In this document: positions 16,172 to 63,313 of the stretch, piece by piece
Numbering within the stretch: the stretch's first letter is position 1
Layout of the letters: each line of letters opens with the position of its first letter
IMG/VR virus record: IMGVR_UViG_3300027759_000046
Span: 124,001 to 188,000 of that record
DNA length: 64,000 nt
Strand: one strand, 5' to 3'
Notes under the pieces: model-generated
Databases searched by the model: none
Seen by the model: only the letters and a program-made list of their open reading frames with translations
What the model was told of the DNA's origin: nothing
Translations under genes and position numbers: made by a program

Positions 16172-16191
16172 CTCTTTTATTTGTTTTTAGT

Positions 16192-49473: not shown

Positions 49474-49573
49474 GCTTTTATTTATTCGATAGGTAGACCC
49501 GGTTCCAGGCCTTTTCGAGCCTCAAGACTCCGGTGCGCGCCCTACAACAATTAGGTAAAGATACCCAGTCTAC

Positions 49574-49666
49574 TTATACTAGAAAAAAGATAAAGATACA
49601 AGACAACACTACAGCCAGACCTATAGGCCAGACCCAACTCCATTCTATCTTACAAGTTCTTTTCAT
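49574..49666 (-). CDS. 30-aa membrane peptide (not in ORF track)
   Basis: MKRTCKIEWSWVWPIGLAVVLSCIFIFFLV after GAGTATATTAG. Confidence 0.45.
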   Translation of the reverse strand: MKRTCKIEWSWVWPIGLAVVLSCIFIFFLV

Positions 49667-49698
49667 AAGCCTAATATACTCTATACCCGGTAACCGGG

Positions 49699-49879
49699 AC
49701 TAGGGAGTACCTGGCAACCTGACCAGCCTCCAGACCCTATAGACCCAGACACGGGACTAGGGAGTAACCCCGAACCCTGAGCCAGACCCCAGACTCGCCT
49801 GACCCCGATGGGACTAGGGAGTGCCGGGCAGCCAGCCGCCCTTGGGGTACCTGCTCGGCCTGCTTAAACACTAGGGAGT
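49699..49879 (+). repeat. Array of four ACTAGGGAGT sites at exact 57-bp period
   Basis: Starts at 49699, 49756, 49813, 49870; 47-bp intervening sequences diverged. Confidence 0.95.
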
Positions 49880-50013
49880 ACGGTGACCCCCTCGGCCTCG
49901 CCGGAAACTCTGGACTCCAGGGTCTCGCGGGGCCGGGGATGCCGAGACTATAGGGACTGGACGGGACATGGGGATCCGCGGAGTCTCGGCAGACCGGGTA
50001 TAAATAAGTCTAT

Positions 50014-50682
50014 ATGGAAACACGCGATACACAAGACGGAGCCGAGGATAACAGAGATTACCTTGCGCCCGGCCACGGACCTACTGGCAATCTGGTCTAT
50101 AAGAAAGATGCAGCTCGGTACCTAGGTATAAGCCTTAAGACTCTAGAGCGCTATGTGAAACAGGGTCTGGTCAAGCCCTTTAAGAACGAGGTAAACGGCC
50201 GAACCTACTTTGACCAGCTGGATCTACTAGCCTTACTAGGGAGTAGACTACCCCAAGAACGAGAGGTTGTGCTGTACTGCCGGGCTGCGGGGATTCCGGA
50301 TCAGGGTAAAGCCGGCGTATCCAGCCAGGCCAGACTGCGAGACCAGGTAGACCGCTGTACCGAGTACTGTACCAAGGCTGGGGTCCGGGTCGATCGTATA
50401 ATCCAAGAGATTGGAAAGGGGCACACCCTGAATGGTCGCAGCGGGATTGACCAATTGCTGGATTTAGTGTTCCGAAAGAAGGTATCAATGATCGTGATCG
50501 AGTGCCCGGATCGTCTGGCTCGTTGGGGCATGGGCGAGGTCTTGGAGAGATTCCTGACCTGGCACGGTGTAGAGCTGCATGTTATAAACAAGGGCTGGTC
50601 ACGTGCCGAATTCCGCGAAGAGGTAAAAGAAGATCTTGCGGGAATCCTATTCGAGGCGAAACGCCTGCTAGGAGAAGCTTAA
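50014..50682 (+). CDS. IS607 TnpA-like serine recombinase (HTH + resolvase fold), catalytic Ser apparently lost
   Basis: AARYLGIS.KTL.RY...G HTH; YCRAA in place of YxRVS; EIGKG...GR; DRLARWG; no adjacent tnpB; promoter TATAAATA at 49999-50006. Confidence 0.85.
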   Translation: METRDTQDGAEDNRDYLAPGHGPTGNLVYKKDAARYLGISLKTLERYVKQGLVKPFKNEVNGRTYFDQLDLLALLGSRLPQEREVVLYCRAAGIPDQGKAGVSSQARLRDQVDRCTEYCTKAGVRVDRIIQEIGKGHTLNGRSGIDQLLDLVFRKKVSMIVIECPDRLARWGMGEVLERFLTWHGVELHVINKGWSRAEFREEVKEDLAGILFEAKRLLGEA

Positions 50683-51053
50683 CTAAATATTGTTGGATTA
50701 CGGCGGCCCCATTCTCTGAGCAAGACGCCAGCCTGGGAGTTTGCCTCGTTCTCTATGTCAGATCCGTCGGCACCGTCCAAGACCTTGCCGCTGTCGCGCT
50801 GATGATGGTGTACCAATTCATGGGCCAAGGTTCTGTACCAGTCTGCACGGACTCTGGTTCCGCGAAGAACCCAGATCTCATTGGACTGTGGATTAAAGTA
50901 TCCCATTGACTTATTTAACATAGCCTCCCTATGGTCATCAGAAATGTGGATCGTTGGGGTGCTGGTCCAGCCTAACTGCTGACGACAGAAGTGTACGAAC
51001 TCCTCTAATTCGGAGTCTTCCTGCCATTCACGGGATTCTTTAATGTATTTCAT
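50679..51053 (-). CDS. HExxH metallopeptidase-like protein with CTS-like start
   Basis: MKYIKE; TLAHELVHH...E.EAN..AG; late promoter at 51057-51066. Confidence 0.75.
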   Translation of the reverse strand: MKYIKESREWQEDSELEEFVHFCRQQLGWTSTPTIHISDDHREAMLNKSMGYFNPQSNEIWVLRGTRVRADWYRTLAHELVHHHQRDSGKVLDGADGSDIENEANSQAGVLLREWGRRNPTIFS

Positions 51054-51249
51054 ATAGTTATTTATTCATGGAGTTCTCAGCGAACCCCAGAAATGTGACC
51101 TTTGTACCTGTCTCGGGGTTTCCCCCAGCACGGGGCGAGCTCCAGAGCCCATGCCAGGTCGGCACGGCCCCGGGGCTTTGGGCGCCTTATTCTAATATAC
51201 CATTTTGCCCATCATTCGGCAATTAAATAATAAAAAAATAAGATACGTT

Positions 51250-51384
51250 ATGGCTAAACAGATTATTGCAAGACTCCACCTTGCTAAACCCAAAGTAAAG
51301 AAACCCGGCGTACACGCCAAGTCCGGTTCCTCTCGCAACAAGAGATCCAAGAACTACAAGAAGCCCAACGTTGGACAGGGCTAA
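51250..51384 (+). CDS. Small highly basic protein (44 aa, not in ORF track)
   Basis: MAKQIIARLHLAKPKVKKPGVHAKSGSSRNKRSKNYKKPNVGQG. Confidence 0.65.
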   Translation: MAKQIIARLHLAKPKVKKPGVHAKSGSSRNKRSKNYKKPNVGQG

Positions 51385-51389
51385 ACCCA

Positions 51390-51421
51390 AAAAAGGGACT
51401 CCACTAGGGAGTCCCTCTCTT
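51390..51421. terminator. Bidirectional terminator containing an ACTAGGGAGT copy
   Basis: AAAAAAGGGACTCC-ACTAG-GGAGTCCCT. Confidence 0.75.
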
Positions 51422-51441
51422 CATTAACCAATTAACCTTTC

Positions 51442-52560
51442 CTAGATAGCAGCTAGGTCTGCGTGTTGTAGATCCCAAGTCTTAGCGAATAGATTTCCAC
51501 CGTCGACCTTGAAACGTTTTGAGTTCTCGAAGTTGAAGATCGACTGGTGACTTCCAATCCATGTCAACTCGTTAACTACATCCCATACAGTAGCATCAGT
51601 CTTGATAAACTTCTTCTGTGCGTCTGTTAGGGTCAATGGGTTGTGGCCCTTACGGAAGATACGTTTTGTTGCCGCATCGTATTCTGGAAAGAACTGTTGT
51701 TCTGCTGCCTTGATTAGGTGAGCCTTCATGTCAGGATTTTCTTCCTTGATCTGGCCAGTTACTGAGTACATCGCTCGCTCTAATTCTCCGTAGCTTGCAC
51801 GTGTTGTCATCGCTGTTTCCAATCTGTCTTGGAAAGTTCTTGGTACAAATCCTACCTTTGCCCAACCGTTCATGCTCGTTAAGAGTTCGCGGAAAGCGTC
51901 TTGGCCTTTACCAAACTCGAATGCTGTATTCAAGTTTCTGGCTACTGCACCGTTTGCGCAGCTTAGGCGTAAGAAGAAGTCGTCTACTCTTGAGTTGATA
52001 TTGGAGTTTACTAGGGAGATCCCGAAGCGGAACACCTCGTCCTTACCGATCTTCTCAAAGCCTACTTGACTGCCGTGGATGAGGTTGATACTTAAGCCGT
52101 TCTTGCCGCCATGGTCGATTGACTCTACATGCATGTCGGGGATCTCGTTAAGGATCGTCTCCGCCGTGTTGAATAGGGTCTCATTGCTTAGACGATGGTA
52201 ACGATCTGCCTTTACGATATCGCCAACTTCGCGTTTGTCCGCATCGCCGATAAGTAAGAACTCTTTTGAACCGTCACGCGTTTCTGAATAGGCTTTAACT
52301 GCCTGTAATAGTTTGGTCGCGACAGCTCTGTCCTCGTTCTTGTCCATGCGGCTAAGCAACGTGGATTGGATATTGACTGCCTGTCCCAAGCGGTTGAAGA
52401 ACCTGTTAGAGACTGGGATACGTGCGCCATCGATAAAGATGCATCCGTTCTTGATTGAACTATCGTCGATCTGAATATCAGATAACTTAACTCGCTTTGT
52501 TAGCGGATCCTGTCCTGCGAGATTTGCTTTGCTTTCGCTAAATTGACTTTGATTAATCAT
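51442..52560 (-). CDS. DUF932/DUF945-like protein
   Basis: Y.RLSN, FGISLVNS and LRLSCANG motifs. Confidence 0.6.
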   Translation of the reverse strand: MINQSQFSESKANLAGQDPLTKRVKLSDIQIDDSSIKNGCIFIDGARIPVSNRFFNRLGQAVNIQSTLLSRMDKNEDRAVATKLLQAVKAYSETRDGSKEFLLIGDADKREVGDIVKADRYHRLSNETLFNTAETILNEIPDMHVESIDHGGKNGLSINLIHGSQVGFEKIGKDEVFRFGISLVNSNINSRVDDFFLRLSCANGAVARNLNTAFEFGKGQDAFRELLTSMNGWAKVGFVPRTFQDRLETAMTTRASYGELERAMYSVTGQIKEENPDMKAHLIKAAEQQFFPEYDAATKRIFRKGHNPLTLTDAQKKFIKTDATVWDVVNELTWIGSHQSIFNFENSKRFKVDGGNLFAKTWDLQHADLAAI

Positions 52561-52588
52561 GTGGTATATGGTTTTTTGGTTTATATTA

Positions 52589-53689
52589 TTATACTAAATT
52601 GTCTGTAGCTTCGTCCGTTTGCGGAGCAATAGTTTCCTCTTCAGTTGGGGTCTTAACTGATAAGAAGAGATCGTTGAACTTGTGTTCCAACTCCTGACGA
52701 CGAGCTGACTCCTCATCCGCAAGTTTAGCAACCTCGGTCTCCTGTCTCCATGAGGTCTCGTCCCACTTGACTTCACCGTTTACTAGGGAGTAGTATAGAC
52801 GCTTACCGACTAGGCTTCCTCCACGTCTGTTCTTTGAGAACTCTACGAAACGTCTGCCTGACTCGTCGAACTTGATCTCCATCATGGATGTGGTCGCATG
52901 TTTAAGATAGGTAGATCCTACATACTGTCCGCCTTTCGTCATGTGCTGAATTGCAAAGATTGTTTTGCCGTGTTTGTCAGCAGCTTCGATGATGAGGTTG
53001 GTCAGCCATGTCTGGGCTCTCGTAGATTTCCAGCCTAGGATATCCGCAAGCTTTACAATAATATCCTGATGAGAGTCAATCAAGATTACGTCGTGATCCC
53101 CTTTGATTGTGTCTTCCAACACCTTGTCGAAACGACCCATCACGTAGTCCATAACCAATAAGGTCGGAACGTTCGCAATGATTGGGGTTTTTTGGAAGTA
53201 GAAGTAGAGATCGTTACGAGTCATCTCACTTGAGATGTAGAGGATCTTGGCCTCGGGCTGTACTCGCTTGATCTTAGAGATAAGATCCAATGTCACGGTT
53301 GATTTACCTACGCCCGACTCGCCGATTACAATATTAGCAGTTCCCGAAAAGATACCACCGTCTTCCGTATGGTCCGAGAAAAGCTTGTCAATAATACCGC
53401 CCGTCTTGTAGGCTTTAAACTCTGGGAAATCCATCTCACCGATCTCGATAATCTCGGCCACCATGTCTTGGGGTACCTCGATGGTAGGGGTTACTAGGGA
53501 GTCCGTCGTGATACCGGCTCTGAGCTTCTTTATTACTCCATTGAAGAGACCGTAACTCACATTGGCATCTGCACCTGTGGTCATGAACTCTGTGTAGAGC
53601 TGCTGTACTGTCTTGTCCGTTGGGACCTCGCCGTTATGGCTTTGTTCGAAGAAGGTTCGAACCGTAAGTTCTTTTTTTCCGATCTGCAT
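52589..53689 (-). CDS. RecA/RadA(Sms)-like ATPase
   Basis: GGIFSG...GESGVGKST, YISSEM, ILIDS, H.TK.G...G...LKH, KNRRG; lacks Zn finger and Lon-like domain. Confidence 0.8.
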   Translation of the reverse strand: MQIGKKELTVRTFFEQSHNGEVPTDKTVQQLYTEFMTTGADANVSYGLFNGVIKKLRAGITTDSLVTPTIEVPQDMVAEIIEIGEMDFPEFKAYKTGGIIDKLFSDHTEDGGIFSGTANIVIGESGVGKSTVTLDLISKIKRVQPEAKILYISSEMTRNDLYFYFQKTPIIANVPTLLVMDYVMGRFDKVLEDTIKGDHDVILIDSHQDIIVKLADILGWKSTRAQTWLTNLIIEAADKHGKTIFAIQHMTKGGQYVGSTYLKHATTSMMEIKFDESGRRFVEFSKNRRGGSLVGKRLYYSLVNGEVKWDETSWRQETEVAKLADEESARRQELEHKFNDLFLSVKTPTEEETIAPQTDEATDNLV

Positions 53690-53805
53690 ATTTTATTTGG
53701 GGTTAATTGGTTTATAATATTATACTACAGTTCTGCAGTTTTGGCTTCAGTTCTTCAGTTTTTTATTATTTATTTAGACTGAAGAACCGGCCGGACTAGG
53801 GAGTA

Positions 53806-53979
53806 CTACTCATCAAAGTACAGGAACTCAACCGCTTCCGCGCATTCAAACATTCCAAGGTCTTCGAACATGGTGTAGGCTCCGTCAGCATCGCTCATCG
53901 CGACCACCTCCATTGCCTGGTACACGGCGTCCTCGCCGAACTGGGCTATTGCTGCATCTATTTTTTCTTGTGTTACCAT
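53806..53979 (-). CDS. Small acidic protein (57 aa, not in ORF track)
   Basis: MVTQEKIDAAIAQFGEDAVYQAMEVVAMSDADGAYTMFEDLG...FDE. Confidence 0.7.
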   Translation of the reverse strand: MVTQEKIDAAIAQFGEDAVYQAMEVVAMSDADGAYTMFEDLGMFECAEAVEFLYFDE

Positions 53980-53984
53980 AGTTT

Positions 53985-54122
53985 CTATTTTATAATGATT
54001 GTAAATTCTGAACCGAAAGCCATTTGATATTCGCGCTCCAACTCTCTGGCCTCTTTAAGAGTTTTGGCGGTGTCAACTACCTCGCGACCGTAGCGCGATA
54101 CTGCTATGATTTTATATGTCAT
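53985..54122 (-). CDS. Small protein (45 aa, not in ORF track)
   Basis: MTYKIIAVSRYGREVVDTAKTLKEARELEREYQMAFGSEFTIIIK. Confidence 0.7.
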   Translation of the reverse strand: MTYKIIAVSRYGREVVDTAKTLKEARELEREYQMAFGSEFTIIIK

Positions 54123-54124
54123 GA

Positions 54125-54538
54125 TTAGATTGATTTTAAAAGTTGAGTAAATGTTTGAGCTTCAGCAAGTGGCTTATCAAAACCAGTTGCTCGTGAAAAT
54201 GCTTCGGCCTTGCCGTTGTGGCCAGATTTACCGGTTACCCAGAAGAGTACCTCACCGGATTCGCGATCGCAGATTGAGAAGGAATCGTATAGAGGTCCGC
54301 TCATTGGGCAATTGTTCTTGAAGAACACATAGGTCTTTGTACAATCGATAGCACGACCTGATTCGCGAAGCGCATTGACGAACTTGATTACTTGACCCTG
54401 TAGTTTCTTTGCTCTCATGGGTAGAGATGAGTCCTTACAGAACCAATCATAGAAGTCATGGCAATGTGGATAAAGAGCTGATTGGCCTTGGGCCCATGCG
54501 TACATTTGGTCTGCGATTGATACTTGATTTTCTGTCAT
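54125..54538 (-). CDS. Early hypothetical protein
   Basis: DWFCKD...FKNNCP...LYD.F.ICD. Confidence 0.75.
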   Translation of the reverse strand: MTENQVSIADQMYAWAQGQSALYPHCHDFYDWFCKDSSLPMRAKKLQGQVIKFVNALRESGRAIDCTKTYVFFKNNCPMSGPLYDSFSICDRESGEVLFWVTGKSGHNGKAEAFSRATGFDKPLAEAQTFTQLLKSI

Positions 54539-54575
54539 ACGTTAAAGGTTTAATGGTTTAAGAATTAATTGATAT

Positions 54576-54660
54576 GTAAATATAATACATTAGTTTGACA
54601 CTAAAAAACTTTTTATGACTTATTTTCAAAAAAGTTATTAACATTGGATTGTTAATAACT
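54576..54660 (-). promoter_or_regulatory. Early promoter cassette with phased GTTATTAACA box (inverted pair here)
   Basis: TGTTAATAAC-TTTTTTGAAAATAAGTCATAAAAAGTTTT...TATATTTAC. Confidence 0.8.
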
Positions 54661-54736
54661 CGCAGAGTCTGAGGCAGGTCGGAGTATACCTCCCGCTTCC
54701 TTGTTCCGAACCGTCCCGTCTAGATTGATTGACATA

Positions 54737-54804
54737 GTAAATATAATAAAAAACCCTGAATCTAAAAAATCCAGGGTCATTTATTTTCAGGAAAGTTATT
54801 AACA
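54737..54804 (-). promoter_or_regulatory. Early promoter cassette
   Basis: Box 58 bp from the TATATTTAC element; drives a ~75-nt non-coding stretch. Confidence 0.75.
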
Positions 54805-54808
54805 ATTT

Positions 54809-55033
54809 CTAGTGTTCAGGAATCTCTAATTCTAGGTCTCCGATCTTTACTGTCTTGCCGATGAGGTCTCGACTGCTTGCCGCTTTGGCATGGCCGCGGT
54901 GGTCATGGTAATCAAGGTCTATTTCTTCAGTCGCGTTCGCAAGTAGGTTAAACATCTGTTCCGGTTCTTTTACACAAACCTCCCTGCCGTTTTCATAAAG
55001 GTATAGTCGTACTATCTCGTTCATGGTGGTCAT
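54809..55033 (-). CDS. Early hypothetical protein
   Basis: 74-aa ORF. Confidence 0.7.
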   Translation of the reverse strand: MTTMNEIVRLYLYENGREVCVKEPEQMFNLLANATEEIDLDYHDHRGHAKAASSRDLIGKTVKIGDLELEIPEH

Positions 55034-55065
55034 GGGTTTTTTGTTATTTAATAAAAAGAAAGGGG

Positions 55066-55446
55066 TTATAAACCCCTTTGCAATATTTCCTTTTCTCTTT
55101 GAGTTAGGGACTCAACTCCCGATCTCGAAATTTTATCAAGGATTTCGTCCACCGTTAAATCCGGTGTTGCAGTTTGCGCTGCCGTTTTGAGTACCGCATT
55201 GATCGCTTGCATCAACGCCTCAGGAAGATTTAGGTTCACCTTAGTTTCTTCCATTAAGAAGAATGTGGCTCCTGTTTCCTTCACATCCTGGGTGATCTCT
55301 TCCTCTGATGATTGAGTATTAAAGACCGACAGGATTGCGCCCGGAATTGGTGCGGCGAATGCGGGTCCTACAATGTGGGGTTTCAACGCTTGTGAAACCG
55401 CTGGGTTCGGAGCTGAGCCGAATCGAACTAAGAATAATTTTTTCAT
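55066..55446 (-). CDS. Protein with C-terminal DUF6576-like domain
   Basis: VDEILDKISRSGVESLTQREKEIL. Confidence 0.7.
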   Translation of the reverse strand: MKKLFLVRFGSAPNPAVSQALKPHIVGPAFAAPIPGAILSVFNTQSSEEEITQDVKETGATFFLMEETKVNLNLPEALMQAINAVLKTAAQTATPDLTVDEILDKISRSGVESLTQREKEILQRGL

Positions 55447-55469
55447 ATTTGGTTAGATTGATTTATAAA

Positions 55470-55537
55470 GCTAATATACAACAAAACTTTTAAATAAAAA
55501 AACTTTTGATGAATTATTTTCAGAAAAGTTATTAACA
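55470..55537 (-). promoter_or_regulatory. Early promoter cassette
   Basis: TGTATATTAGC element with box at 58 bp. Confidence 0.8.
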
Positions 55538-55589
55538 AAAAAGGGAGCCACATGGACTCCCGATCTTGTCAATAAACCAATTTTACCAA

Positions 55590-55886
55590 TTATACCAAAT
55601 GTAGTATCTCAGCTAGAGCGCGATCAGTTACTCGTCGGCTCATACCTCCAATATGCCATTCAATAGTTTCTTCTTTCGAGATGCGACGGTATTCTTTCCA
55701 GTCGTAGATGGTAAATACATCTCCTTCTTCCGTTTCGCAAATCCATTCGAAATTTACTTTATCTTCTCCAGTATTATCTTCAATCGTGGGTTCTCCAAGG
55801 ATTGCGATAAGGTCATTCACTGAACACTTTAATACTGTATCGTGGAACGAGGTTCCGCCTGCACGCTTTTCGGTTTTTCTAGCCAT
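55590..55886 (-). CDS. Early hypothetical protein
   Basis: DKVNFEW...FTIYDWK...WHIGG; promoter TGTATATTAGC at 55913-55923. Confidence 0.75.
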   Translation of the reverse strand: MARKTEKRAGGTSFHDTVLKCSVNDLIAILGEPTIEDNTGEDKVNFEWICETEEGDVFTIYDWKEYRRISKEETIEWHIGGMSRRVTDRALAEILHLV

Positions 55887-55950
55887 GGTTATTTTTTTAG
55901 TTGGTTGATAAAGCTAATATACAACAAAAACCTGATACTGGAAAATCTTT

Positions 55951-56274
55951 TTAAATATTTTTTACAGGTATTTTCTCGATCAAGGCTAGGCTGCCAAGCG
56001 GAGACCACATAGCCTCTTCATAGCTTTCAAACCGGGACCGGTCCCATAGCCAGACCAGACCGTGCTTCTTCCATTCCTCTCGCGCTGCACGCTCTGTCCT
56101 GCTTGCTTCGGCGATCTGCATCTGAAACAAGGCAATTGCATACACGGCTTTAAATGTTCCGCAGACACAGACAGGTTTTTCTTCTTCCCCTACACGAGAG
56201 GTTAGCAACCAGACTTCTTTATTTTTCCGGGTTGGACTAGGCATGTTAATCTCTTTTTTCTGGTACGAATACAC
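55951..56274 (-). CDS. Hypothetical protein
   Basis: 107-aa ORF. Confidence 0.6.
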   Translation of the reverse strand: MYSYQKKEINMPSPTRKNKEVWLLTSRVGEEEKPVCVCGTFKAVYAIALFQMQIAEASRTERAAREEWKKHGLVWLWDRSRFESYEEAMWSPLGSLALIEKIPVKNI

Positions 56275-56353
56275 AGTAGATACAGAATGCTACACTTACT
56301 AGGATTGCTATTGCGCACATGGTTGAATGGATTAAGGGGTTAATAATATTATC

Positions 56354-56602
56354 TTACCCAAGTTCTTCACTTAACTTCTTGAGGTCAGCACATTTCTCGT
56401 ACTGCTCTTTCTTTTCAAAATGCAAGATCATGGTCCAGATAGCCTGTTTCTTTTCTTCCATTGGGGTTCCATCGTGCACGACATCTCTGAATTCGCCGGC
56501 CAGTGCTTCATAGAGTCTGTCCATGAATCCATCGTAATCTGATTCGCGCAGCCGGATAAGTTCCAGCAGGATATCGTTGTATGTTCTGGTTTTCTTTGCC
56601 AT
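56354..56602 (-). CDS. Hypothetical protein with UVR-like C-terminus
   Basis: FEKKEQYEKCADLKKL. Confidence 0.65.
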   Translation of the reverse strand: MAKKTRTYNDILLELIRLRESDYDGFMDRLYEALAGEFRDVVHDGTPMEEKKQAIWTMILHFEKKEQYEKCADLKKLSEELG

Positions 56603-56721
56603 ATCTTTATTATTTATTCTTGTTTATTTAGAGTCACTCAGCGTGAATCTTAGCTTGTCTATAATATAGTACTAAAAAAGGGTCTTCGGAACACCGAGAC
56701 CCTTAATAATAATTTGGATTA

Positions 56722-57048
56722 CTAGATAAATTGGGTTAGGTAGCCGGTCGGCCAGCCCTCATCGTCCTGTTCAAAGTCCATGTCTGTCTGAATCAGGTCC
56801 GAGTAAATGCTTAGCTTCTCGCGTGGTTCCAGCCCGGCAAAGCAGTTAGAGATTAGGGTATCTACTGATTCGTCTGGTACAAACTCATCGTCCAACCTGA
56901 CTGAACCATCTTCTAACATGAAGATGTCTACTGCTAAGTTCTCTCGCATTATGTCTATTGCATCTGCTGCATTTAACTCTGCAAGGTAAGCGTCTACTTG
57001 TTCGAACGCTTCTTCAATTGGAACTCTTAATAGGTCTGGATTTCTCAT
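56722..57048 (-). CDS. Acidic hypothetical protein
   Basis: 108-aa ORF. Confidence 0.7.
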   Translation of the reverse strand: MRNPDLLRVPIEEAFEQVDAYLAELNAADAIDIMRENLAVDIFMLEDGSVRLDDEFVPDESVDTLISNCFAGLEPREKLSIYSDLIQTDMDFEQDDEGWPTGYLTQFI

Positions 57049-57061
57049 TGTTAAATCTTGG

Positions 57062-57187
57062 TTAGGGTTGATAAAAGAATAGAATACACGTTGCTACTAC
57101 TGCGAGAGCAATGATAATCAATGCTCCATTAATTAGAGAATCTCTTCTCATCATTTTAACTTCTTTTTCTGAAAATTTCTTTGCCAT
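57062..57187 (-). CDS. Small membrane protein (41 aa, not in ORF track)
   Basis: MAKKFSEKEVKMMRRDSLINGALIIIALAVVATCILFFYQP. Confidence 0.6.
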   Translation of the reverse strand: MAKKFSEKEVKMMRRDSLINGALIIIALAVVATCILFFYQP

Positions 57188-57223
57188 CTTTTTTATATTT
57201 TAATTGATTAATAATTTAGGTAA

Positions 57224-57679
57224 TTAGGCGGCGTTCTTTACGAACGCCTTGTCTGCCCATGTCTTAGCTCCAGCCATCCTATAATTATTCTGACTGTATA
57301 GATTAGTATTAGACCAGTCTTGATTGATGTCGCCCACTTCCATTGCCAGGAACATGTCCGAATCCATTAACTTGATCTTGTTACCTGACCTTGCGAATAC
57401 AGTGATGAAGGTTTCTGATCCTTCTGCTCTGAACTCGATTGTCTGCAACGCGCCTTTTTTAAATCCTCTGAATACATCCATTGCAGAGTTCCAAGACTGT
57501 CTTCCCCAATTTGCTCTAATGCCATGGTCTTCAACGACTGTCATGAAGCCTGCCTGTACTCGAACGATTGCGCGGTATTCGCCTTTACGGCCTTGGATAA
57601 AATCCACTTGGCTGATTCTCTCCGCATTGAAGATTTCAACTGATGGTTTGTAGTCTGGATTAAATTGTTTCTTTTTCAT
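57224..57679 (-). CDS. Early hypothetical protein
   Basis: 151-aa ORF; partial promoter cassette at 57704-57755. Confidence 0.75.
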   Translation of the reverse strand: MKKKQFNPDYKPSVEIFNAERISQVDFIQGRKGEYRAIVRVQAGFMTVVEDHGIRANWGRQSWNSAMDVFRGFKKGALQTIEFRAEGSETFITVFARSGNKIKLMDSDMFLAMEVGDINQDWSNTNLYSQNNYRMAGAKTWADKAFVKNAA

Positions 57680-57754
57680 GGTTGATTGATTTGGTTTATA
57701 ATAGTAAATATAATACTTATTCTTGACAGTAAAAAACTTTTTATGAATTATTTT

Positions 57755-58063
57755 TTAAAATCTTTCTGAACCTAAATGAGAGCAGGCAGAAGAGTATCTC
57801 TCGAGAAGGTTGCTGCCGGCTAGCAGAAGAAAGCTTGAACCTGCAATTCCACGGATCTTATAATCTTCAGGTACTATAACACTGCCAAGTCTGCTGCCGC
57901 CTGAATCCAGTGTCATAATGAATCTACCTTCTCGAACCACTATGAATTCGGAAGAGAAGCCTTCCATCGTAGAGCCCGACGCAATTTGAGTCCAGCCAAT
58001 TTCTTGACCAGACTCGTTTAAGATTTGGAGGCTTGAACCTCGTTGTATAACATTACCTATCAT
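57755..58063 (-). CDS. Hypothetical beta-rich protein
   Basis: 102-aa ORF with a two-fold internal repeat-like pattern. Confidence 0.65.
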   Translation of the reverse strand: MIGNVIQRGSSLQILNESGQEIGWTQIASGSTMEGFSSEFIVVREGRFIMTLDSGGSRLGSVIVPEDYKIRGIAGSSFLLLAGSNLLERYSSACSHLGSERF

Positions 58064-58278
58064 GCTGTTGTCTTTGAATTTTTAATACACTCTTGAAATT
58101 CTTCTTCCGTCAGGTCAGGTATATCCTGAGTTACAAGCTTTAGCAGGGTTGCTGCTTCTATCTCTGTTACTAGGGAGTCCTTATTGACTTTGCCCTTAAA
58201 AGGATCTCCTTCAGAGAATAGAATCTCGACTGCGGTCTCTGCCCAGAAGCGGGCTTCTAATTGAGTTGTCATTATCAT
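58060..58278 (-). CDS. Hypothetical protein
   Basis: 72-aa ORF. Confidence 0.65.
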   Translation of the reverse strand: MIMTTQLEARFWAETAVEILFSEGDPFKGKVNKDSLVTEIEAATLLKLVTQDIPDLTEEEFQECIKNSKTTA

Positions 58279-58994
58279 ACGCCTACCTCCTTTCTCATTT
58301 TAGCACGAGCAACCTTAAGGGCACGGTTAACTTCGACTGGGGTTTTACCTACTGCATCCGCAACTTCCTTGGTAGAGAGACCGTCTCCAACGAGACCGTA
58401 GAACAACTCGACGATTTGACGTTCAGTTGGTTTAAGAACGTTAAGTACTCTACGGAGTATTCGGGTTTGGTCCTCACTATCGAATGGGTCTTGGAAATCT
58501 TCTCTTAACAAGAGATCGCCTACTGTATCGTCGCCATCCTCGCCGATTGGACGATCCAATTGGATGTTACGCATGTTAATGCTTTCGCCTGCCATCTTAC
58601 GTTTGTAAAGATCGTATTCCTGATTTACTGGAATTCGGACAGTACGACCGACTTCGCAAAGAGCAAGGTTTAATCTCTTACGAATCCAGAACTGAGCGTA
58701 AGTAATAAACTTTACGTCTTTATCTGGGGTAAAACGACGAGCAGCTTCGATAAGACCCGCATTACCTTCTTGGATTAAGTCATCGATGGAAAGACCCATA
58801 CCGATAAACTTGTTTGCAAGAGTAACAACGAACTTAAGATTCGCTTGTACTAATTGATGCATTGCTCGCTCATCTCCTTTCTGGATGCGGACTGCTAATT
58901 GAAGTTCTTCAGCCTTGCTGAGCGGAACTGCTACGGGCGCGATATCTTTGAAATATTGCGGTAGACTTTCTGATGTTTCGAATCTTTTCGACAT
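58275..58994 (-). CDS. RNA polymerase sigma-70 family factor (regions 1.2-4)
   Basis: PLSKAEE..LA..I..GD..A...LV.ANL.FV, DLIQEGN.GL..AA..F, KFITYA.FWIR, C-terminal HTH. Confidence 0.95.
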   Translation of the reverse strand: MSKRFETSESLPQYFKDIAPVAVPLSKAEELQLAVRIQKGDERAMHQLVQANLKFVVTLANKFIGMGLSIDDLIQEGNAGLIEAARRFTPDKDVKFITYAQFWIRKRLNLALCEVGRTVRIPVNQEYDLYKRKMAGESINMRNIQLDRPIGEDGDDTVGDLLLREDFQDPFDSEDQTRILRRVLNVLKPTERQIVELFYGLVGDGLSTKEVADAVGKTPVEVNRALKVARAKMRKEVGV

Positions 58995-59024
58995 AGTTGG
59001 TTTGGTTTAATTGATTATTATAAT

Positions 59025-59092
59025 GTAAATATAAACAAAATTTCTGACAAGTAAAAACTTTTTATGACTTATTTTCAAAAAAGTTATTAACA
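59025..59092 (-). promoter_or_regulatory. Early promoter cassette driving the sigma factor
   Basis: TATATTTAC element with GTTATTAACA box at 58 bp. Confidence 0.8.
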
Positions 59093-59096
59093 ATTG

Positions 59097-59207
59097 TTAG
59101 TTAACAACTTGACCGCAATCGCAGCATTTTACAAGTTTGATTCCTGAAACGTGGCGAACTGCTACGTAAGTTCTGATGTGTTGGCATTTGGCTGATTGGT
59201 TATTCAT
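59097..59207 (-). CDS. 36-aa Cys/His peptide (not in ORF track)
   Basis: MNNQSAKCQHIRTYVAVRHVSGIKLVKCCDCGQVVN; own partial promoter cassette at 59211-59265. Confidence 0.6.
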   Translation of the reverse strand: MNNQSAKCQHIRTYVAVRHVSGIKLVKCCDCGQVVN

Positions 59208-59329
59208 AATGTAAATATAACTATAATACTTGACAGTAAAAAACTTTTTGTGAATTATTTTCAAATTATTTTATACGCGAAAAGGGGTCCAACCACGGAC
59301 CCCAATTCTATCAATCAACCAATAGTATT

Positions 59330-59611
59330 TTAATTTAAGCAGATTCCTGTTTCTCGTAACAGGTTCTCTAATTGTATATCTTCTTCAGACATGCCTGATT
59401 CTCTCTTAACCTGTTTAATACAGAACTGCATAAGCAATCGTTGAAGCTCTTGCGTACTGCGCTCGTCCTGTGTTGCGGCCAATAGGGTTATTAATCCATT
59501 ACCGATTAAGATAAGTTCTGAATCAGATGTCTTGATTCCGCCCGCGATTAGGCTATTCGCCAAGGTCTCTAGCTCGGCTCTTGTTTTTTCTCTAATTTCT
59601 TTCTTATTCAT
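59330..59611 (-). CDS. Hypothetical protein
   Basis: 93-aa ORF. Confidence 0.7.
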   Translation of the reverse strand: MNKKEIREKTRAELETLANSLIAGGIKTSDSELILIGNGLITLLAATQDERSTQELQRLLMQFCIKQVKRESGMSEEDIQLENLLRETGICLN

Positions 59612-59639
59612 GGTAGTTGATTATTGATTTAATCTTATA

Positions 59640-59834
59640 TTACTCTTTTCCAAGCGCGATGGCCTTGTTCACTTCATAGATTCTTGACCAGAATTCGTTG
59701 TATTCAAGTTGATTGTCTGGCTTTACAGTTGACTGTACTCTCGCACCGCCGCCATAGGTTAAGTCAATGGGTTCTCCGATCGTTGGATCAATTCCCTGTA
59801 ATTTATAGATTAAGGCCTTAAGTATTTTCTTCAT
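59640..59834 (-). CDS. Hypothetical protein
   Basis: 64-aa ORF. Confidence 0.65.
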   Translation of the reverse strand: MKKILKALIYKLQGIDPTIGEPIDLTYGGGARVQSTVKPDNQLEYNEFWSRIYEVNKAIALGKE

Positions 59835-59949
59835 AGTTATTAGGTTTTACAGATTAAGTTTGTTTTTTAAGGGTCACGCGATTCCCCCAGTACTACTGCG
59901 TGGTCCAGGACCCATGCCTGGGAGGCACGGAAATCCAGGACTAGGTCTA

Positions 59950-60144
59950 TTAACAGATTCGATTGGCCACAAAGCCTTGTGCATCGCTTGCGCCATAGTA
60001 TTTCTTGATCGCGGCCGGTGCGGTAGGATTATCCATCAGCCAGCCATCCGCAATATCGAACGCCATTGAATCGTCTATGTCTCCGGCATCGATTGCGCCC
60101 AGTGCAAGCTCTCGTAATTCAGTATCTAATTTTTCTTTTGTCAT
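59950..60144 (-). CDS. Hypothetical protein
   Basis: 64-aa ORF. Confidence 0.65.
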   Translation of the reverse strand: MTKEKLDTELRELALGAIDAGDIDDSMAFDIADGWLMDNPTAPAAIKKYYGASDAQGFVANRIC

Positions 60145-60203
60145 AGGTATTAGTTTTAGGGTTTAGGGTTAGATTTATAATCAACTGTTACTAGGGAGTC
60201 CGG

Positions 60204-60671
60204 CTAGGCCAGACCCTTGTCTCGTAAAAACAGGCAGCGCTGAATCCTGGTATACAGGTCCGGCAAGGAGTCTGTCATCGCTAAGATCTTCTTTAGGTCA
60301 GGCTTGGGTAGGGTTGACGCAACCATCGCAACCGCAACATCGATTGGATTACCGAGCTTCAGCTGCTCCATGATCTGGCTCGAGCCGGTTGGGCTGATTG
60401 AGCCGGGAATCTTGCACTGTGCTCCGAACTCAAATTGATAGAAGGATTGACGTTCCGTCTGATCAACTAAACTTGCATCAAGCATCTGTCTCACGCGCTG
60501 GATATGCTTGCTTGTCGTGCGGCTGTACTTGCCCTTTGTCATGAGAACTGGTCTACGGCTCAGCTCCTTTGGATAGAACTGTAGGGTCGCGACATGGGTT
60601 TCGTAGCTTATTACCTTGTTCCCAACGAGGAATAGGTTCTGTGCAATCTGTAGAGATGGTTGGAATTTCAT
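60204..60671 (-). CDS. Early hypothetical protein
   Basis: VISY.THVA...KYSRTTSKH motif; shortened promoter cassette at 60675-60721. Confidence 0.7.
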   Translation of the reverse strand: MKFQPSLQIAQNLFLVGNKVISYETHVATLQFYPKELSRRPVLMTKGKYSRTTSKHIQRVRQMLDASLVDQTERQSFYQFEFGAQCKIPGSISPTGSSQIMEQLKLGNPIDVAVAMVASTLPKPDLKKILAMTDSLPDLYTRIQRCLFLRDKGLA

Positions 60672-60755
60672 AGGTTAAATATAAGCATTTTAATTGAGAT
60701 AAAACAATAAAGTTATTAACATAGCTACTAGGGAGTCCGACATAGCCGGTGAGTC

Positions 60756-61274
60756 CTATGACTCTACCGGCGAGAATACTTCGGCAAGGTTGAAGTTGCC
60801 AGCCTGACTGCTGTGAAGCATACGCTCTAAGCATACGGGACCGAGCGCTGTGTGAATCGATTCCGGATGGGTAAGCGGTAATCCGCAAGCGCAGCATCTG
60901 CCTTCGTGGAATAGACCTACACGACCGCGTAAGATCTCTGGATTCTTGATCGCTGATACGACCCAGCCTAGGGCGCGAGCTAAGCGGGAATCCGGTCTAA
61001 CGTTGCGGCCGAGCTTTACGTGCATGGTATCAGAGAATAGAGTTCCTGCGAACTGCGAGCTTTGACGGCCGTCGTTAAGCAAGGAGATGTCAATGTAATA
61101 GATCGGCAACTTGATCTTGCGATCCTGCTTATCGCGCAGCTGCTTGATCTTAACTGTCATGTGGGTTCCTTCCGCAAGGTTACGGAACGTAAGCACTGCA
61201 CGGCCTGCTAACGCGAGCTTTGGAAGAGCAAGCGGGTTGAGGTTTGGACGGGGGATGTTTCTGTGGTTTCTCAT
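60756..61274 (-). CDS. Protein with C-terminal DUF6011-like Zn-binding motif
   Basis: HEGRCCACG.PLT.PESI...LGPVC. Confidence 0.75.
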   Translation of the reverse strand: MRNHRNIPRPNLNPLALPKLALAGRAVLTFRNLAEGTHMTVKIKQLRDKQDRKIKLPIYYIDISLLNDGRQSSQFAGTLFSDTMHVKLGRNVRPDSRLARALGWVVSAIKNPEILRGRVGLFHEGRCCACGLPLTHPESIHTALGPVCLERMLHSSQAGNFNLAEVFSPVES

Positions 61275-61297
61275 GGTTGATTGGTTTAATTGATTAA

Positions 61298-61376
61298 GTA
61301 AATATAACCAATTACTTTCAAATAAAAAAACTTTTTATGATTTATTTTTCAGAAGTTATTAACAAAGTTATTAACA
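61298..61376 (-). promoter_or_regulatory. Early promoter cassette with tandem direct GTTATTAACA boxes
   Basis: Boxes at 61355-61364 and 61367-61376. Confidence 0.8.
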
Positions 61377-61437
61377 CTGGCGGACTGACGTGCAGGTCGG
61401 AGTCTACCCTCTGCGATCCGGTTAAAGATCGAACCTT

Positions 61438-61461
61438 AAAAAACCGGGCGAACCCGGTTCT
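61438..61461 (-). terminator. Intrinsic terminator
   Basis: AACCGGG-TTCG-CCCGGTT followed by TTTT. Confidence 0.85.
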
Positions 61462-61478
61462 CTGTGGTGGGTTGAGGT

Positions 61479-61622
61479 TTAGAACTCGAACGCGGTCGTT
61501 GAGGAGATATTACCGATTACGACATTTACGATTACGACAACGATTCCGATAATCGCGATTCCCGCTAGACACACGGTCCAAGTTTGCATTGCACGTAGTG
61601 CGATCATTTCTGTTTTGCTCAT
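61479..61622 (-). CDS. Small membrane protein (47 aa, not in ORF track)
   Basis: MSKTEMIALRAMQTWTVCLAGIAIIGIVVVIVNVVIGNISSTTAFEF; promoter cassette at 61652-61718. Confidence 0.65.
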   Translation of the reverse strand: MSKTEMIALRAMQTWTVCLAGIAIIGIVVVIVNVVIGNISSTTAFEF

Positions 61623-61695
61623 GGTTGATTTGGTTAATTGGTTAAACATAAGTAAATATAATAATTATCTTTGATATAAAAAAATTTCTGATGAA

Positions 61696-61932
61696 TTATT
61701 TTTCAGAAGTTATTAACAATTCCGGGTTAACGCTTTCGGATTCCGCATAGATCTTTAGACATTGCGGACAGCCTACCGTCTCGAGACCGGATATCCTGGC
61801 CCAGTTGTTGCTAAGCGCTGGCGTTCCGCACAGGTTTCCTGTTCCGCTTTTGTAGATGTGGGCCGTGTTGTTCCATACGTTGCCCTTGTTTCCGAAGATG
61901 GAGAAGTTTGGTTTGAGGTCTTTTGTTTGCAT
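61696..61932 (-). CDS. Small Cys/His protein
   Basis: AHI...LCG...GC..C; promoter TATATTTAC at 61955-61963. Confidence 0.7.
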   Translation of the reverse strand: MQTKDLKPNFSIFGNKGNVWNNTAHIYKSGTGNLCGTPALSNNWARISGLETVGCPQCLKIYAESESVNPELLITSEK

Positions 61933-62131
61933 TGCTTTCTTTTTTATTGGTTAAGTAAATATAACAAAAAAACCCCAAACAAAAAAATCTGGGGTCTTTT
62001 ATTTTCTTCTTTTTTTCTAGAGGCAATGGATAAGGATTCCGTAAAATCCTATTCCTGCCAAAAAGTAAATCAGGTTGTTCAACCACTTAGGGTATTTTTC
62101 CATGCTTCTCGTTTAGGGTTAATAATAGATT

Positions 62132-62293
62132 CTATTCTTCGGGTCCAATGAGGTCCCATGCGGTTTCGCCGGTTGGCTTGCCGTTGAAGGTGATGGAGTA
62201 GTTGGGGTCCATGCCGCTCTCGAGGACATCTGCTAAGAGAGCAGGAAGGGTTGGGAATTCCTTTTGGTAGTAGGCGCAGTCTAATGAATACAT
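62132..62293 (-). CDS. Small hypothetical protein
   Basis: Start moved to MYSLDCAYY because the track start overlaps the promoter TTATATTTG (62321-62329), an exact Bacteroidota -7 consensus. Confidence 0.65.
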   Translation of the reverse strand: MYSLDCAYYQKEFPTLPALLADVLESGMDPNYSITFNGKPTGETAWDLIGPEE

Positions 62294-62371
62294 ATCTTTT
62301 CTTTTTAATTGGTTAAGATACAAATATAACCAAAATACTTGATATTAAAAAATCCTGGTCAACTTATTTTC

Positions 62372-62899: not shown

Positions 62900-63002
62900 A
62901 TAATAATCTTTTATCTGTTATATCTTATATTACCAAAAGGAGAAAGGGTCTACTCTCGCGGACCCTTTCTTTTGTTTAGATGGTTAGCTTAATTGTTTTG
63001 GA

Positions 63003-63242: not shown

Positions 63243-63313
63243 GTTACTTAAGTTAAGTTTGATTTGTTATAAGGATAACTTACCCATTACTCTAAGCTAT
63301 TGGCCTGTTATCT

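Follow-up and report, generated by a model that had tools for sequence, protein, structure and literature searches.

Closest described systems and the window analysed

Serine transposases of the IS607 family combine an N-terminal MerR/excisionase-type winged helix with a serine-recombinase catalytic domain, in which the nucleophile serine lies in a conserved Y-x-R-V-S-(S/T)-x-x-Q motif. IS1535 TnpA nucleates cooperatively on four 9-bp, helically phased direct repeats, about 10-11 bp apart, in the end next to tnpA, then spreads and captures a second DNA segment (PMC6188088). A different kind of short polar DNA word is known from phages whose genomes carry localized single-strand interruptions, such as T5 and the phiKMV-like phages. 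Phage tf has 14 TACT/RTGMC sites, all on one strand, with near-cognates absent, positions shared among relatives and a one-base change of consensus between relatives (PMC3517423), while Rembedalsseter has exactly 13 WACTRTGAC sites on one strand, conserved in 61 phages with little nucleotide similarity, inside and outside genes and unevenly distributed (PMC11780129). DNA-binding modules of transposase origin and looping operators also serve regulation, as in the Mu repressor/MuA operators and gal OE-OI, with operators upstream of and inside a coding region flanking a promoter. Iteron origins such as R6K and P4 ori/crr join clusters of 17-22 bp direct repeats, spaced about 22 bp and next to an initiator gene, to isolated copies some kilobases away, with some copies lying within genes of the replication module. 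Chi and KOPS are strand-polarised words of 5-8 bp that are read by host enzymes and spread genome-wide with replication-related skew.

Here, we analysed a window of 64,000 bp (positions 124001-188000 of a 253,137-bp JGI contig, IMG/VR record IMGVR_UViG_3300027759_000046) from an uncultured freshwater jumbo phage, in which a 10-base word marks the early-gene region. A sequence-only reading had reported 13 copies of a strand-polarised word in 11 kb, and our analyses confirmed this observation. All 13 coordinates are exact + strand matches to ACTAGGGAG, spanning 49699-60735, with none on the - strand and none in 1-49698 or 60736-64000. Dinucleotide shuffles gave a mean of 0.35 copies and a maximum of 2, and the word is the most frequent 9-mer in the window. 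Twelve of the 13 copies extend to ACTAGGGAGT, whereas the copy at 52010 ends in A. A one-mismatch search added only two hits elsewhere (14515 on the - strand and 47609 on the + strand), below the chance expectation of 2.84. A 99.99% identical strain showed no further copy out to window-equivalent 73.9 kb; hence, the absence of the word elsewhere is shown for 74 kb only, roughly 70% of the genome lying outside the sequence read.

Organisation and conservation of the sites

Four copies, at 49699, 49756, 49813 and 49870, form an array (49699-49879, +) in which they are spaced exactly 57 bp apart with unrelated spacers, in a GC-rich (51-72%) region between two divergent promoters. Homologous arrays of 3-5 copies with 57/58-bp spacing occur in relatives. 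The array lies upstream of TAGTATAAGT (49572-49581, -), a middle-type promoter-like box for the leftward operon that starts at 49473, which matches the TAGTATAATA boxes found 10 times in the window and is conserved in relatives. On the other side, a ATAAATAA box (50000-50007, +), a late-promoter-like element, lies 6 nt before the ATG of the recombinase-like gene, hereafter REC (50014-50682, +). The same GATAAATAA box lies 5-20 nt before the ATG in relatives of both clades, and before eight - strand genes of the window.

REC is a 222-aa IS607 TnpA-like protein that matched Pfam HTH_17 (residues 31-75), Resolvase (105-214) and phrog_6620 'transposase', and whose best PDB sequence hits were the IS607-family TnpA catalytic domains 3lhf, 3ilx, 6dgc and 6dgb. 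However, its active site is degenerate: the family motif is Y-C-R-A-A-G-I-P-D-Q-G, the canonical serine position is Ala in 76 of 86 sequences, and the alternative that HMMER aligns with the TnpA nucleophile (S103, present in the window's own protein) is Ser in only 49 of 86, i.e., absent in 43%, and is preceded by Gly instead of Arg. The 'dead recombinase' of the sequence-only reading thus needs a qualification. REC also keeps invariant Arg and Asp residues of the old active site (R90, D166, R167, R170). In contrast to a mobile element with tnpB, variable locations and several copies, REC is a single-copy gene without tnpB, in identical synteny (late block, array, REC, 124-aa gene, 44-aa ORF, 372-aa gene, RadA-like gene) in relatives down to 30% identity. 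Real IS607 transposases found in other phages, which are relatives of REC that keep the canonical motif (Y-[AS]-R-V-S-T), show no such cluster of sites.

The remaining nine copies are dispersed. As the sequence-only reading stated, five of the 13 are coding: the copy at 50235-50244, at +221 from the REC ATG, encodes LLGS in the + strand gene, while those at 52010 (ISLV), 52782 (YSLV), 53493 (DSLV) and 58169 (DSLV) lie antisense in - strand genes. REC is followed by a convergent conserved 124-aa gene (50679-51053, -), which overlaps it by 4 nt and has a weak metallopeptidase-like match, and by a conserved, very basic 44-aa ORF on the REC strand (51250-51384, +), which is called as a gene in the related genomes L002, L011 and L012 (here and below, L numbers denote relatives). 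The copy at 51403 forms the loop and one arm of the hairpin (GGGACTCC / GGAGTCCC) of an intrinsic terminator of the leftward early block (51389-51415, -), followed by a T-run on the - strand, and the same arrangement occurs in L056. The copy at 52010 lies at aa 181 of a conserved 372-aa protein of unknown fold (51442-52560, -), whose AF2 model (pLDDT 79) had no significant PDB match, and copies 52782 (aa 300) and 53493 (aa 63) lie in the gene for a RadA/Sms-like ATPase (52589-53689, -). The intergenic copy at 53795-53804 is 2 nt after the stop of gene 53806-53979 (-) and upstream of the promoter region of the ATPase gene. The copy at 58169-58178 lies inside a 72-aa gene (58060-58278, -) and is conserved at the same offset in L043 and L044. 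The copy at 60190-60199 is 5 nt after the stop of gene 60204-60671 (-), and that at 60727-60736 lies between the stop of gene 60756-61274 (-) and the -35-like element of an early promoter (60712-60721), a juxtaposition of motif and early promoter also seen in L010.

The word is neither a chance occurrence nor a coding by-product. ACTAGGGAG, or its variant ACTACGGAG, is the top or near-top 9-mer around the homologous locus in more than 25 related phage contigs whose proteins are only 30-77% identical; ACTAGGGAG itself takes this place in relatives whose REC is 45-66% identical, and ACTACGGAG in L055 and in the clade with about 30% identity. Both variants coexist within single genomes and even within one 57-bp pair. 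Pooled over 33 related loci, 242 copies lie on one strand and 3 on the other. Only position 5 (G or C), position 10 (T to A) and position 1 (A to T) vary, and information is confined to positions -3 to +11 around the word (KKT-ACTASGGAGT-MC, with weak flanks), i.e., to about 13 bp, the size of a single winged-helix footprint. Pairs and arrays are typically spaced 56-58 bp, and thirty-nine neighbour spacings fall at 55-58 bp, including pairs inside coding sequence. This fits a protein-DNA assembly rather than an RNA structure.

The sequence-only reading had named conditions under which its proposal would fail, and none of them refuted it: the motif is absent from the other strand and from the rest of the 74 kb read, and the coding copies are frozen at synonymous positions. 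In 13 ATPase orthologues, the only two of 89 invariant degenerate-amino-acid columns that use one codon throughout are the Ser and Leu of the motif at the YSLV site, and genomes lacking that site have other amino acids there. In the 372-aa protein, genomes without the site keep SLV but use other codons. The geometry around the REC start is likewise conserved, as three to five direct copies lie upstream of the gene in most relatives, and in most lineages of both clades the proximal upstream copy lies at -124 to -151 and an intragenic copy at +191 to +221 from the REC ATG. Among the main-clade genomes L050 has no intragenic copy and L013/L056 have theirs at +236 and +293, whereas in most distant-clade genomes the copy lies at +192 to +195, in a different reading frame and protein column.

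A putative role of REC in reading the sites

Given these results, we postulate that ACTASGGAGT is a cis-acting DNA site read by a phage-encoded, sequence-specific DNA-binding protein, most likely the adjacent REC, a domesticated IS607-type serine transposase that keeps its winged-helix DNA-binding domain and its dimer-forming resolvase fold. By analogy with IS607 transposases, REC would bind head to tail to the 57-bp phased array upstream of its gene and to the copy about 200 bp inside it, and would thereby loop out and autoregulate its own late-type promoter through sites at about -140 and +200. It would also bind the single and paired sites at transcription-unit boundaries and inside genes across the adjacent 11 kb of leftward early genes, possibly to shut off, insulate or compact that region once REC accumulates. 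We assign this reading a probability of only about 0.45. Our analyses establish that the site is real, strand-polarised, regionally confined, under selection at the DNA level and co-inherited with REC, with a fixed geometry around the REC start; that REC binds it, and what such binding achieves, is inferred from sequence alone, the proposed silencing, looping or insulation resting on site positions only. Moreover, no residue of the REC recognition helix tracks the G or C variant, and the site is far stricter than typical operator sets, such strictness being more typical of enzymes such as nickases or recombinases. The 57-bp spacing is unlike the phasing of IS1535 motifs, and, unlike the IS1535 repeats, the sites extend over 11 kb and into genes. 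Every relative found has both REC and the motif, so phyletic profiling cannot separate REC from any other conserved gene of the module, and the retained Arg and Asp residues could mean some residual chemistry rather than pure binding. The Mu and gal systems involve unrelated protein families, and the number, strictness and strand polarity of the sites described here are unusual for operators.

The interpretation offered by the sequence-only reading is supported in part. The motif is a selected, directional DNA-level signal confined to the early region in the sequence read, and a link to the adjacent recombinase-like gene is plausible, with looping or silencing remaining the preferred, though inferred, mechanism. 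The claim that polarity follows the DNA rather than transcription is weaker than stated, since the only sense-strand copies lie in the one gene that is itself inverted within a block that otherwise runs entirely leftward. The comparison with Chi or KOPS is not supported: the word is 10-13 bp long, specific to one phage lineage and locally clustered in 57-bp phased arrays, with two variants within single genomes and homologous positions kept across phages with proteins of only 30-77% identity, and it is absent from 60 kb of the same genome. A scan of 185,579 bacterial and archaeal genomes for the paired pattern gave only about chance-level or unrelated tandem-repeat hits, plus mis-binned phage contigs. 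A host-read polar signal, be it a Chi-like hotspot, a KOPS-like translocase guide or a restriction-evasion bias, is therefore very unlikely, despite the strict polarity and the proposal of the sequence-only reading that the sites cluster near a region that could enter the cell first.

The main rival, which we consider unlikely but not negligible, is that the sites are recognised by a phage nickase, with REC possibly as the enzyme or its targeting subunit, so that packaged DNA would carry localized single-strand interruptions at ACTASGGAGT. The signature closely matches that of tf and Rembedalsseter: 13 sites lie on one strand, the asymmetric consensus is extremely strict with one degenerate position, G/C drift occurs between clades, the sites lie inside and outside genes, are unevenly distributed and are conserved in relatives without nucleotide similarity, and the 5' part (T)ACTA resembles TACT/R, while REC retains invariant active-site Arg and Asp residues. 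However, known nick motifs are scattered over the genome, whereas these sites are confined to one 11-kb region, within the 74 kb read, of a genome of at least 253 kb, and neither tandem arrays at 57-bp spacing nor a conserved geometry around one promoter are described in the two nick-motif papers we read. A tblastn search of REC against GenBank phages found no homologue in tf-like, phiKMV-like or T5-like phages, no protein is shared with those phages, the nucleophile Ser is absent in 43% of REC homologues, no nickase was identified here, and nicks, which cannot be seen in assemblies, remain hypothetical. It is also improbable that the array is a replication origin, with the copies as iterons for an initiator encoded in the conserved module (REC, the 372-aa protein or the RadA-like ATPase) and the dispersed copies as auxiliary or handcuffing sites. 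The copies are indeed direct repeats in one orientation next to conserved DNA-metabolism genes, some lie inside those genes, recalling lambda ori inside gene O, arrays plus distant single copies resemble iteron plasmids, and an AT-rich stretch flanks the array. Nevertheless, this stretch is better explained as a conserved promoter box, the 57-bp spacing and 10-bp size are atypical for iterons, the ATPase is RadA-like rather than an initiator, the 372-aa protein has no recognisable fold, no initiator was recognised, and nearly all genes share one strand, which leaves no skew signal.

We regard two transcript-based readings as still less likely. The motif resembles T7-type initiation regions (the T7-group core ACTATAGGGAG) and could be a compact promoter, or its initiation region, for a phage RNA polymerase, driving rightward transcription of REC and antisense RNAs across the early genes, since arrays lie directly upstream of one of the few rightward genes and single copies sit at the 3' ends of leftward genes, where antisense RNAs could start. 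Yet single-subunit polymerase promoters need 15-23 bp, while conservation does not extend beyond about 3 bp upstream of the word; most copies point against the genes, those inside REC and just after the 44-aa ORF make no sense as promoters, and the 57-bp phasing is unexplained. REC has its own ATAAATAA box, no such polymerase was seen in the 74 kb read, and the phage encodes sigma factors. Alternatively, the signal could act in RNA, leftward transcripts carrying ACUCCSUAGU as a processing or regulatory site and arrays yielding about 57-nt RNAs, as all copies could lie in leftward transcripts, single copies cluster 0-30 nt after stop codons and next to terminators, and one copy is part of a terminator hairpin. 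However, consensus folding of the array region with RNAalifold gave only weak support (-13.6 kcal/mol, covariation term -0.33), there was no Rfam hit, the 57-nt spacing also holds inside the REC coding sequence, where the spacer is unrelated, and the geometry is conserved relative to the REC start on the opposite strand. A CRISPR array can also be set aside, as the conserved unit is only 10-13 nt instead of 23-47 nt, the last spacer is conserved among phages and no cas genes are present in the module.

Implications for uncultured jumbo phages

A further, unlikely possibility is that the REC family represents a serine-recombinase active site repurposed without its serine, which, together with the strictly specified sites, would place strand-specific marks (nicks or tightly paired nucleoprotein nodes) on the early region of these phages. 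Since the phage uses T4-like ATAAATAA late boxes and nearly all late genes lie leftward of the array, we speculate that such marks could serve as fixed, strand-polar entry or enhancer sites that couple late transcription or packaging to that position, or could act as a programmed switch that shuts down the early block.

Jumbo phages known only from metagenomes are almost unannotated, and their regulatory logic is unknown. The locus described here offers a concrete, testable cis/trans pair, a 10-bp word and a 222-aa protein conserved across a wide clade of freshwater phages, and points to an undescribed phage cis-regulatory or DNA-marking system. If REC reads the sites, this would be, as far as we could find, an undescribed case of an IS607-type serine transposase domesticated as a phage regulator or DNA organiser, and it would also show DNA-level selection strong enough to dictate amino acids in four other proteins and in the regulator's own former active site. 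If, instead, the sites are nicked, this would extend the 50-year-old puzzle of nicked phage genomes to jumbo phages and provide a candidate enzyme. Either way, the motif is a compact marker for recognising this phage clade and its early region in metagenomes.

The ACTASGGAGT word and its genomic setting

In the analyzed window, ACTAGGGAG occurs 13 times, and all copies lie on the + strand between 49699 and 60735, with none on the - strand and none elsewhere. Hence, the observation of the sequence-only reading held, with every copy at exactly the position it had given. One hundred dinucleotide-preserving shuffles yielded a mean of 0.35 copies and a maximum of 2, the word is the most frequent 9-mer in the window, and a one-mismatch search added only two hits elsewhere, fewer than the 2.8 expected by chance; thus, chance or low complexity was rejected as an explanation. 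Twelve copies extend to ACTAGGGAGT. The first four copies are exactly 57 bp apart and share only GGGACTAGGGAGT, while their spacers are unrelated. A tandem repeat or CRISPR-like array was also rejected, since Tandem Repeats Finder reported no 57-bp repeat in the array region and only 10-13 nt are shared between units. The array spacers (49600-49990; compare positions 9480-9760 of the related contig L043) are C-rich on the + strand and carry recurring CCAGACC and CTATAG words; the last spacer (consensus GCCCAAAGGGTACAAGCTGTGCAT) is conserved among phages, whereas the others are not.

The window belongs to a 253,137-bp JGI freshwater contig (Ga0209296_1000013, also IMG/VR UViG_3300027759_000046), in which, by our derivation, window position x corresponds to record position 124000 + x. 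The element is a jumbo phage, with T4-type topoisomerase II subunits whose best relatives lie in 630-640 kb uncultured phages, two RNA ligases, lysozymes and 19 tRNA genes, of which 18 form an array within 5 kb (11334-16279) and one lies at 1799-1876, all on the - strand. Nearly all genes are on the - strand. Imperfect 27/51-bp tandem repeats (10245-10423) were found inside the 445-aa ORF 9763-11100, which has no family match. A comparison with GenBank phages returned no nucleotide match. The motif region is the left three-quarters of a leftward block of small early genes spanning about 51.4-64 kb, which includes a sigma-70-type factor (58275-58994) and is bounded on the right by a switch in gene orientation. 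A 99.99% identical strain shows no further copy out to window-equivalent 73.9 kb; the cluster is therefore flanked by at least 49 kb and at least 13 kb of motif-free DNA, in an analysis that left out the other roughly 180 kb of the genome.

Three classes of promoter-like words recur on the - strand. The first is a roughly 70-nt early-promoter-like composite with eight copies at 54.6-61.7 kb (window 54576-61965), consisting of TGTTAATAACTT, then AAAAGTTTTTT, then TTATATTTAC, followed by a conserved AATCAATTAAACCA leader; relatives have equivalent but different early words, for example ATTTTTTCCT in the related contigs L075 and L076. The word TAGTATAATA (10 copies, at 3063, 5028, 9698, 16586, 21185, 27327, 29620, 37740, 52587 and 53718) lies 5-35 nt before ATGs. 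The word GATAAATAAC (8 copies, at 7321, 11304, 13949, 15255, 39407, 42557, 45811 and 51057) in several cases lies only a few nt before the ATG, is reminiscent of the T4 late box TATAAATA, and suggests leaderless or near-leaderless late mRNAs; no Shine-Dalgarno sequence is evident.

A transposase-like gene and a conserved synteny

The ORF adjacent to the array (50014-50682, + strand; here called REC) has an HTH_17/MerR-type winged helix followed by a resolvase catalytic domain, and matches a PHROG annotated as transposase. Its closest solved relatives are IS607-family TnpA catalytic domains, while in GenBank phages its only relatives are real IS607 transposases at about 30% identity. REC belongs to a family of at least 85 protein clusters (45-97% identity) from contigs of up to 293 kb. 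In this family the canonical Y-x-R-V-S-S-x-x-Q motif reads Y-C-R-A-A-G-I-P-D-Q-G, and the canonical serine position is Ala in 76 of 86 sequences. HMMER instead aligns S103 of the window protein with the TnpA nucleophile, but that position is Ser in only 49 of 86 sequences, follows an 11-residue insertion, and is preceded by Gly rather than Arg. Residues Y88, R90, R107, Q111, D166, R167 and R170 are invariant. Hence, as a family, recombinase chemistry is not conserved, though part of the phosphate-binding pocket is, and the term 'dead recombinase' used in the sequence-only reading is a fair description of the family and probable, but not proven, for this protein. One distant REC homologue (contig L090, 12451-13056) reads Y-S-R-V-D-S-S-S-Q, nearly the canonical serine motif, while its genome still carries 11-12 copies of ACTACGGAG spread over at least 20 kb at irregular spacing; possibly, it represents an intermediate between an active transposase and the domesticated form.

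Synteny is conserved in distant relatives, in the order late block, about 0.5-0.7 kb of intergenic DNA, REC (+), a 124-133 aa gene (-), a 44-aa ORF (+), a 372-aa gene (-) and a RadA-like ATPase (-), followed further on by a sigma factor. REC is therefore not a mobile element. In the window, the 124-aa gene (50679-51053, - strand) is convergent with REC, overlaps it by 4 nt, and has a weak match to putative metallopeptidase families (DUF6782, Tox-MPTase3), below the Pfam cut-offs. The conserved, very basic 44-aa ORF (51250-51384, + strand) lies on the REC strand, ends 18 nt before a terminator that contains a motif copy, is called as a gene in relatives, and has no Pfam hit. The AF2 model of the 372-aa protein (pLDDT 79) has no significant PDB fold match, and its profile finds no PDB sequence match.

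Conservation, selection and geometry of the sites

The word is conserved along with this locus. In the related contig L010 (REC 64% identical), ACTAGGGAG is the top 9-mer, with 9 copies on the + strand, none on the - strand, and a 57/58-bp array, whereas in L013 (47% identical) there are 6 + strand copies and 1 - strand copy. A scan of IMG/VR for two copies 46-50 bp apart found 24 contigs, and within each the copies lie on one strand. Loci retrieved through a REC alignment show the same pattern; in contig L055 (50% identity) and in a clade with about 30% identity, the word is ACTACGGAG(T) instead, with 7-11 copies and none on the other strand. Loci retrieved through the ATPase (47-77% identity) all carry one or the other variant, and have REC wherever the contig reaches that far; hence, phyletic profiling did not discriminate REC from other possible readers. 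Both variants coexist within genomes, even within a single 57-bp pair, and no covariation of the REC recognition helix with the G or C variant is evident. Pooled over 33 loci (0.5 Mb), 242 copies lie on the major strand and 3 on the minor strand. The only tolerated changes are G or C at position 5, T to A at position 10 (8 cases) and A to T at position 1 (4 cases), while every other one-mismatch variant is at background on both strands. Information content is confined to positions -3 to +11, giving KKT-ACTASGGAGT-MC.

We next asked whether the coding copies could be a by-product of conserved peptides, and the evidence rejected this possibility. In the ATPase, the YSLV site is TAC TCC CTA GTA/GTC in all 13 main-clade sequences (the Val third base varies), while neighbouring Arg, Leu and Tyr codons vary, and relatives without the site have SMA, KLD or TLD at that position. 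Among 89 invariant columns of degenerate amino acids in that alignment, the only two that use a single codon in every sequence are the motif's Ser and Leu. In the 372-aa protein, SLV is conserved as protein, but genomes that lack the DNA word encode it with other codons (TCT CTC GTC, TCA CTG GTA, TCC TTG GTA, TCT TTA GTG). In REC, the LLGS copy is (C/T)TA CTA GGG AGT in 13 of 14 main-clade genomes. The distant clade has LLGK without the word and instead carries it 19 codons further along in the protein alignment, in another reading frame (GGG ACT ACG GAG, encoding GTTE), at the former active-site position; at that same column four main-clade genomes have a second copy (GTA CTA GGG AGT, encoding VLGS). 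Free synonymous variation at coding copies, which had been set beforehand as a refuting condition, is therefore clearly not what we observed.

Neighbour spacings peak sharply at 55-58 bp (39 pairs); the next class is 63 bp (5 pairs), and the rest range from 87 bp to several kb. Pairs at 56-58 bp occur upstream of REC, inside REC and in early intergenic regions, with unrelated spacers. Around REC the layout is conserved in most lineages of both clades: a GATAAATAA box lies 5-20 nt before the ATG, the proximal upstream copy lies at -124 to -151, and an intragenic copy lies at +191 to +221 (+192 to +195 in the distant clade). Among the related contigs, L050, L096 and L097 lack the intragenic copy, whereas L013 and L056 lack upstream copies and carry two at +236 and +293. 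In L013, the lineage without an upstream ACTAGGGAG array, the same intergenic region (9680-9830) instead carries five copies of an unrelated 16-17 bp repeat beginning AAACTTGACCTTGCCG, at spacings of 65, 33, 17 and 17 bp, and the 57-bp motif pair lies inside the REC gene. Half of all copies are intergenic although only 17% of the DNA is. Single copies typically sit 0-30 nt after the stop codon of a leftward gene, just after or within an intrinsic terminator and before the next promoter; in the window these are 53795, 60190, 60727 and 51403, the last of which forms the loop and one arm of the terminator that closes the early block.

Candidate readers of the sites

A contiguous footprint of about 13 bp, strict orientation, fixed 57 ± 1 bp pairing regardless of what the spacer encodes, and a conserved arrangement around one promoter all point to recognition of double-stranded DNA by a protein assembly. 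The best candidate, put forward tentatively and on sequence evidence alone, is REC, since its ancestors bind exactly this kind of target: IS1535 TnpA nucleates cooperatively on four 9-bp direct repeats in the transposon end next to tnpA, spreads non-specifically, and captures a second DNA segment (PMC6188088). Moreover, real IS607 transposases in other phages, which retain the serine motif, have no such clusters. What the sequences themselves establish is the word, its polarity, its conservation across relatives and selection on it at the DNA level, whereas the binding of REC to the sites, and what such binding would achieve, are inferred. The interpretation offered in the sequence-only reading, of a directional signal or a set of loading sites marking the early region, is hence partly supported, but its comparison with Chi or KOPS is not supported.

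The main rival is that the sites are nick sites, because their statistical signature is almost the same as that of nick-associated motifs: phage tf has TACT/RTGMC at 14 sites on one strand, with near-cognates missing and a one-base change of consensus in relatives (PMC3517423), and Rembedalsseter has WACTRTGAC at exactly 13 sites on one strand, conserved in 61 phages (PMC11780129). The extreme strictness of the word and the retained Arg and Asp pocket of REC fit an enzyme better than an operator set. However, the local clustering, the phased arrays, the promoter-centred geometry and the absence of REC homologues in the known nicked phages speak against nicking, which assemblies cannot show and which would here be inferred from sequence alone. 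Locally GC-rich flanks, considered as a nick stabiliser, were found only for the array and not for the single copies (P = 0.31). Contig ends near the array were considered as a sign of physical ends or nicks, but in the one relative examined (L057) the break falls, by our reading, within local tandem repeats seen in L013. A search for mosaic boundaries at the sites among strains was uninformative, as the strains are 99.9% identical with no indels. The two readings are not exclusive.

Other possibilities are less likely. An iteron origin would have atypical size and spacing, and no initiator is recognisable, while a T7-like promoter is at odds with the lack of upstream conservation and with placements that make no sense for a promoter. 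A signal acting in RNA is disfavoured by a weak RNAalifold consensus (for the + strand, the only one folded), by the absence of any Rfam hit, and by the spacing being kept inside unrelated coding sequence. A host-read signal of the Chi or KOPS type does not fit a motif that is lineage-specific, clustered and positionally conserved. Consistently, scans of bacterial genomes and metagenomes with the paired pattern gave hits at about the level chance predicts, or unrelated tandem repeats and tRNA-end duplications, with the exception of phage contigs that appear mis-binned, such as CAIWBA010000291.1 (L156; 254,203 bp). This contig of the same phage type carries 8 motif copies on one strand, with a 57/58-bp array, and is deposited as part of a 'Bacteroidetes bacterium' MAG, which could be a weak host hint or a binning artefact. 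In the Bacteroidota contigs L132, L146 and L168, CTCCGTAGT, the reverse complement of the C variant, is also the start of a tRNA-like sequence (GGCTCCGTAGTTCAACTGG), beside which it is duplicated at 55-59 bp spacing; despite the resemblance to tRNA-end duplications at integration sites, this is probably a coincidence.

A literature search for the word returned only nucleosome-positioning sequences, and we found no description of this word or of a domesticated IS607 transposase in phages, although transposase-derived binding-site sets and phage nick motifs, to one of which the present sites would be related, are both known. Within the limits of incomplete genome coverage and without an experimental readout, the finding is real and conserved across a broad clade of uncultured freshwater jumbo phages. 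Sites on both sides of the REC promoter suggest autoregulation by looping and, given the sites at transcription-unit boundaries, we speculate that REC, which carries a late-type box, may insulate, shut off or compact the early block.
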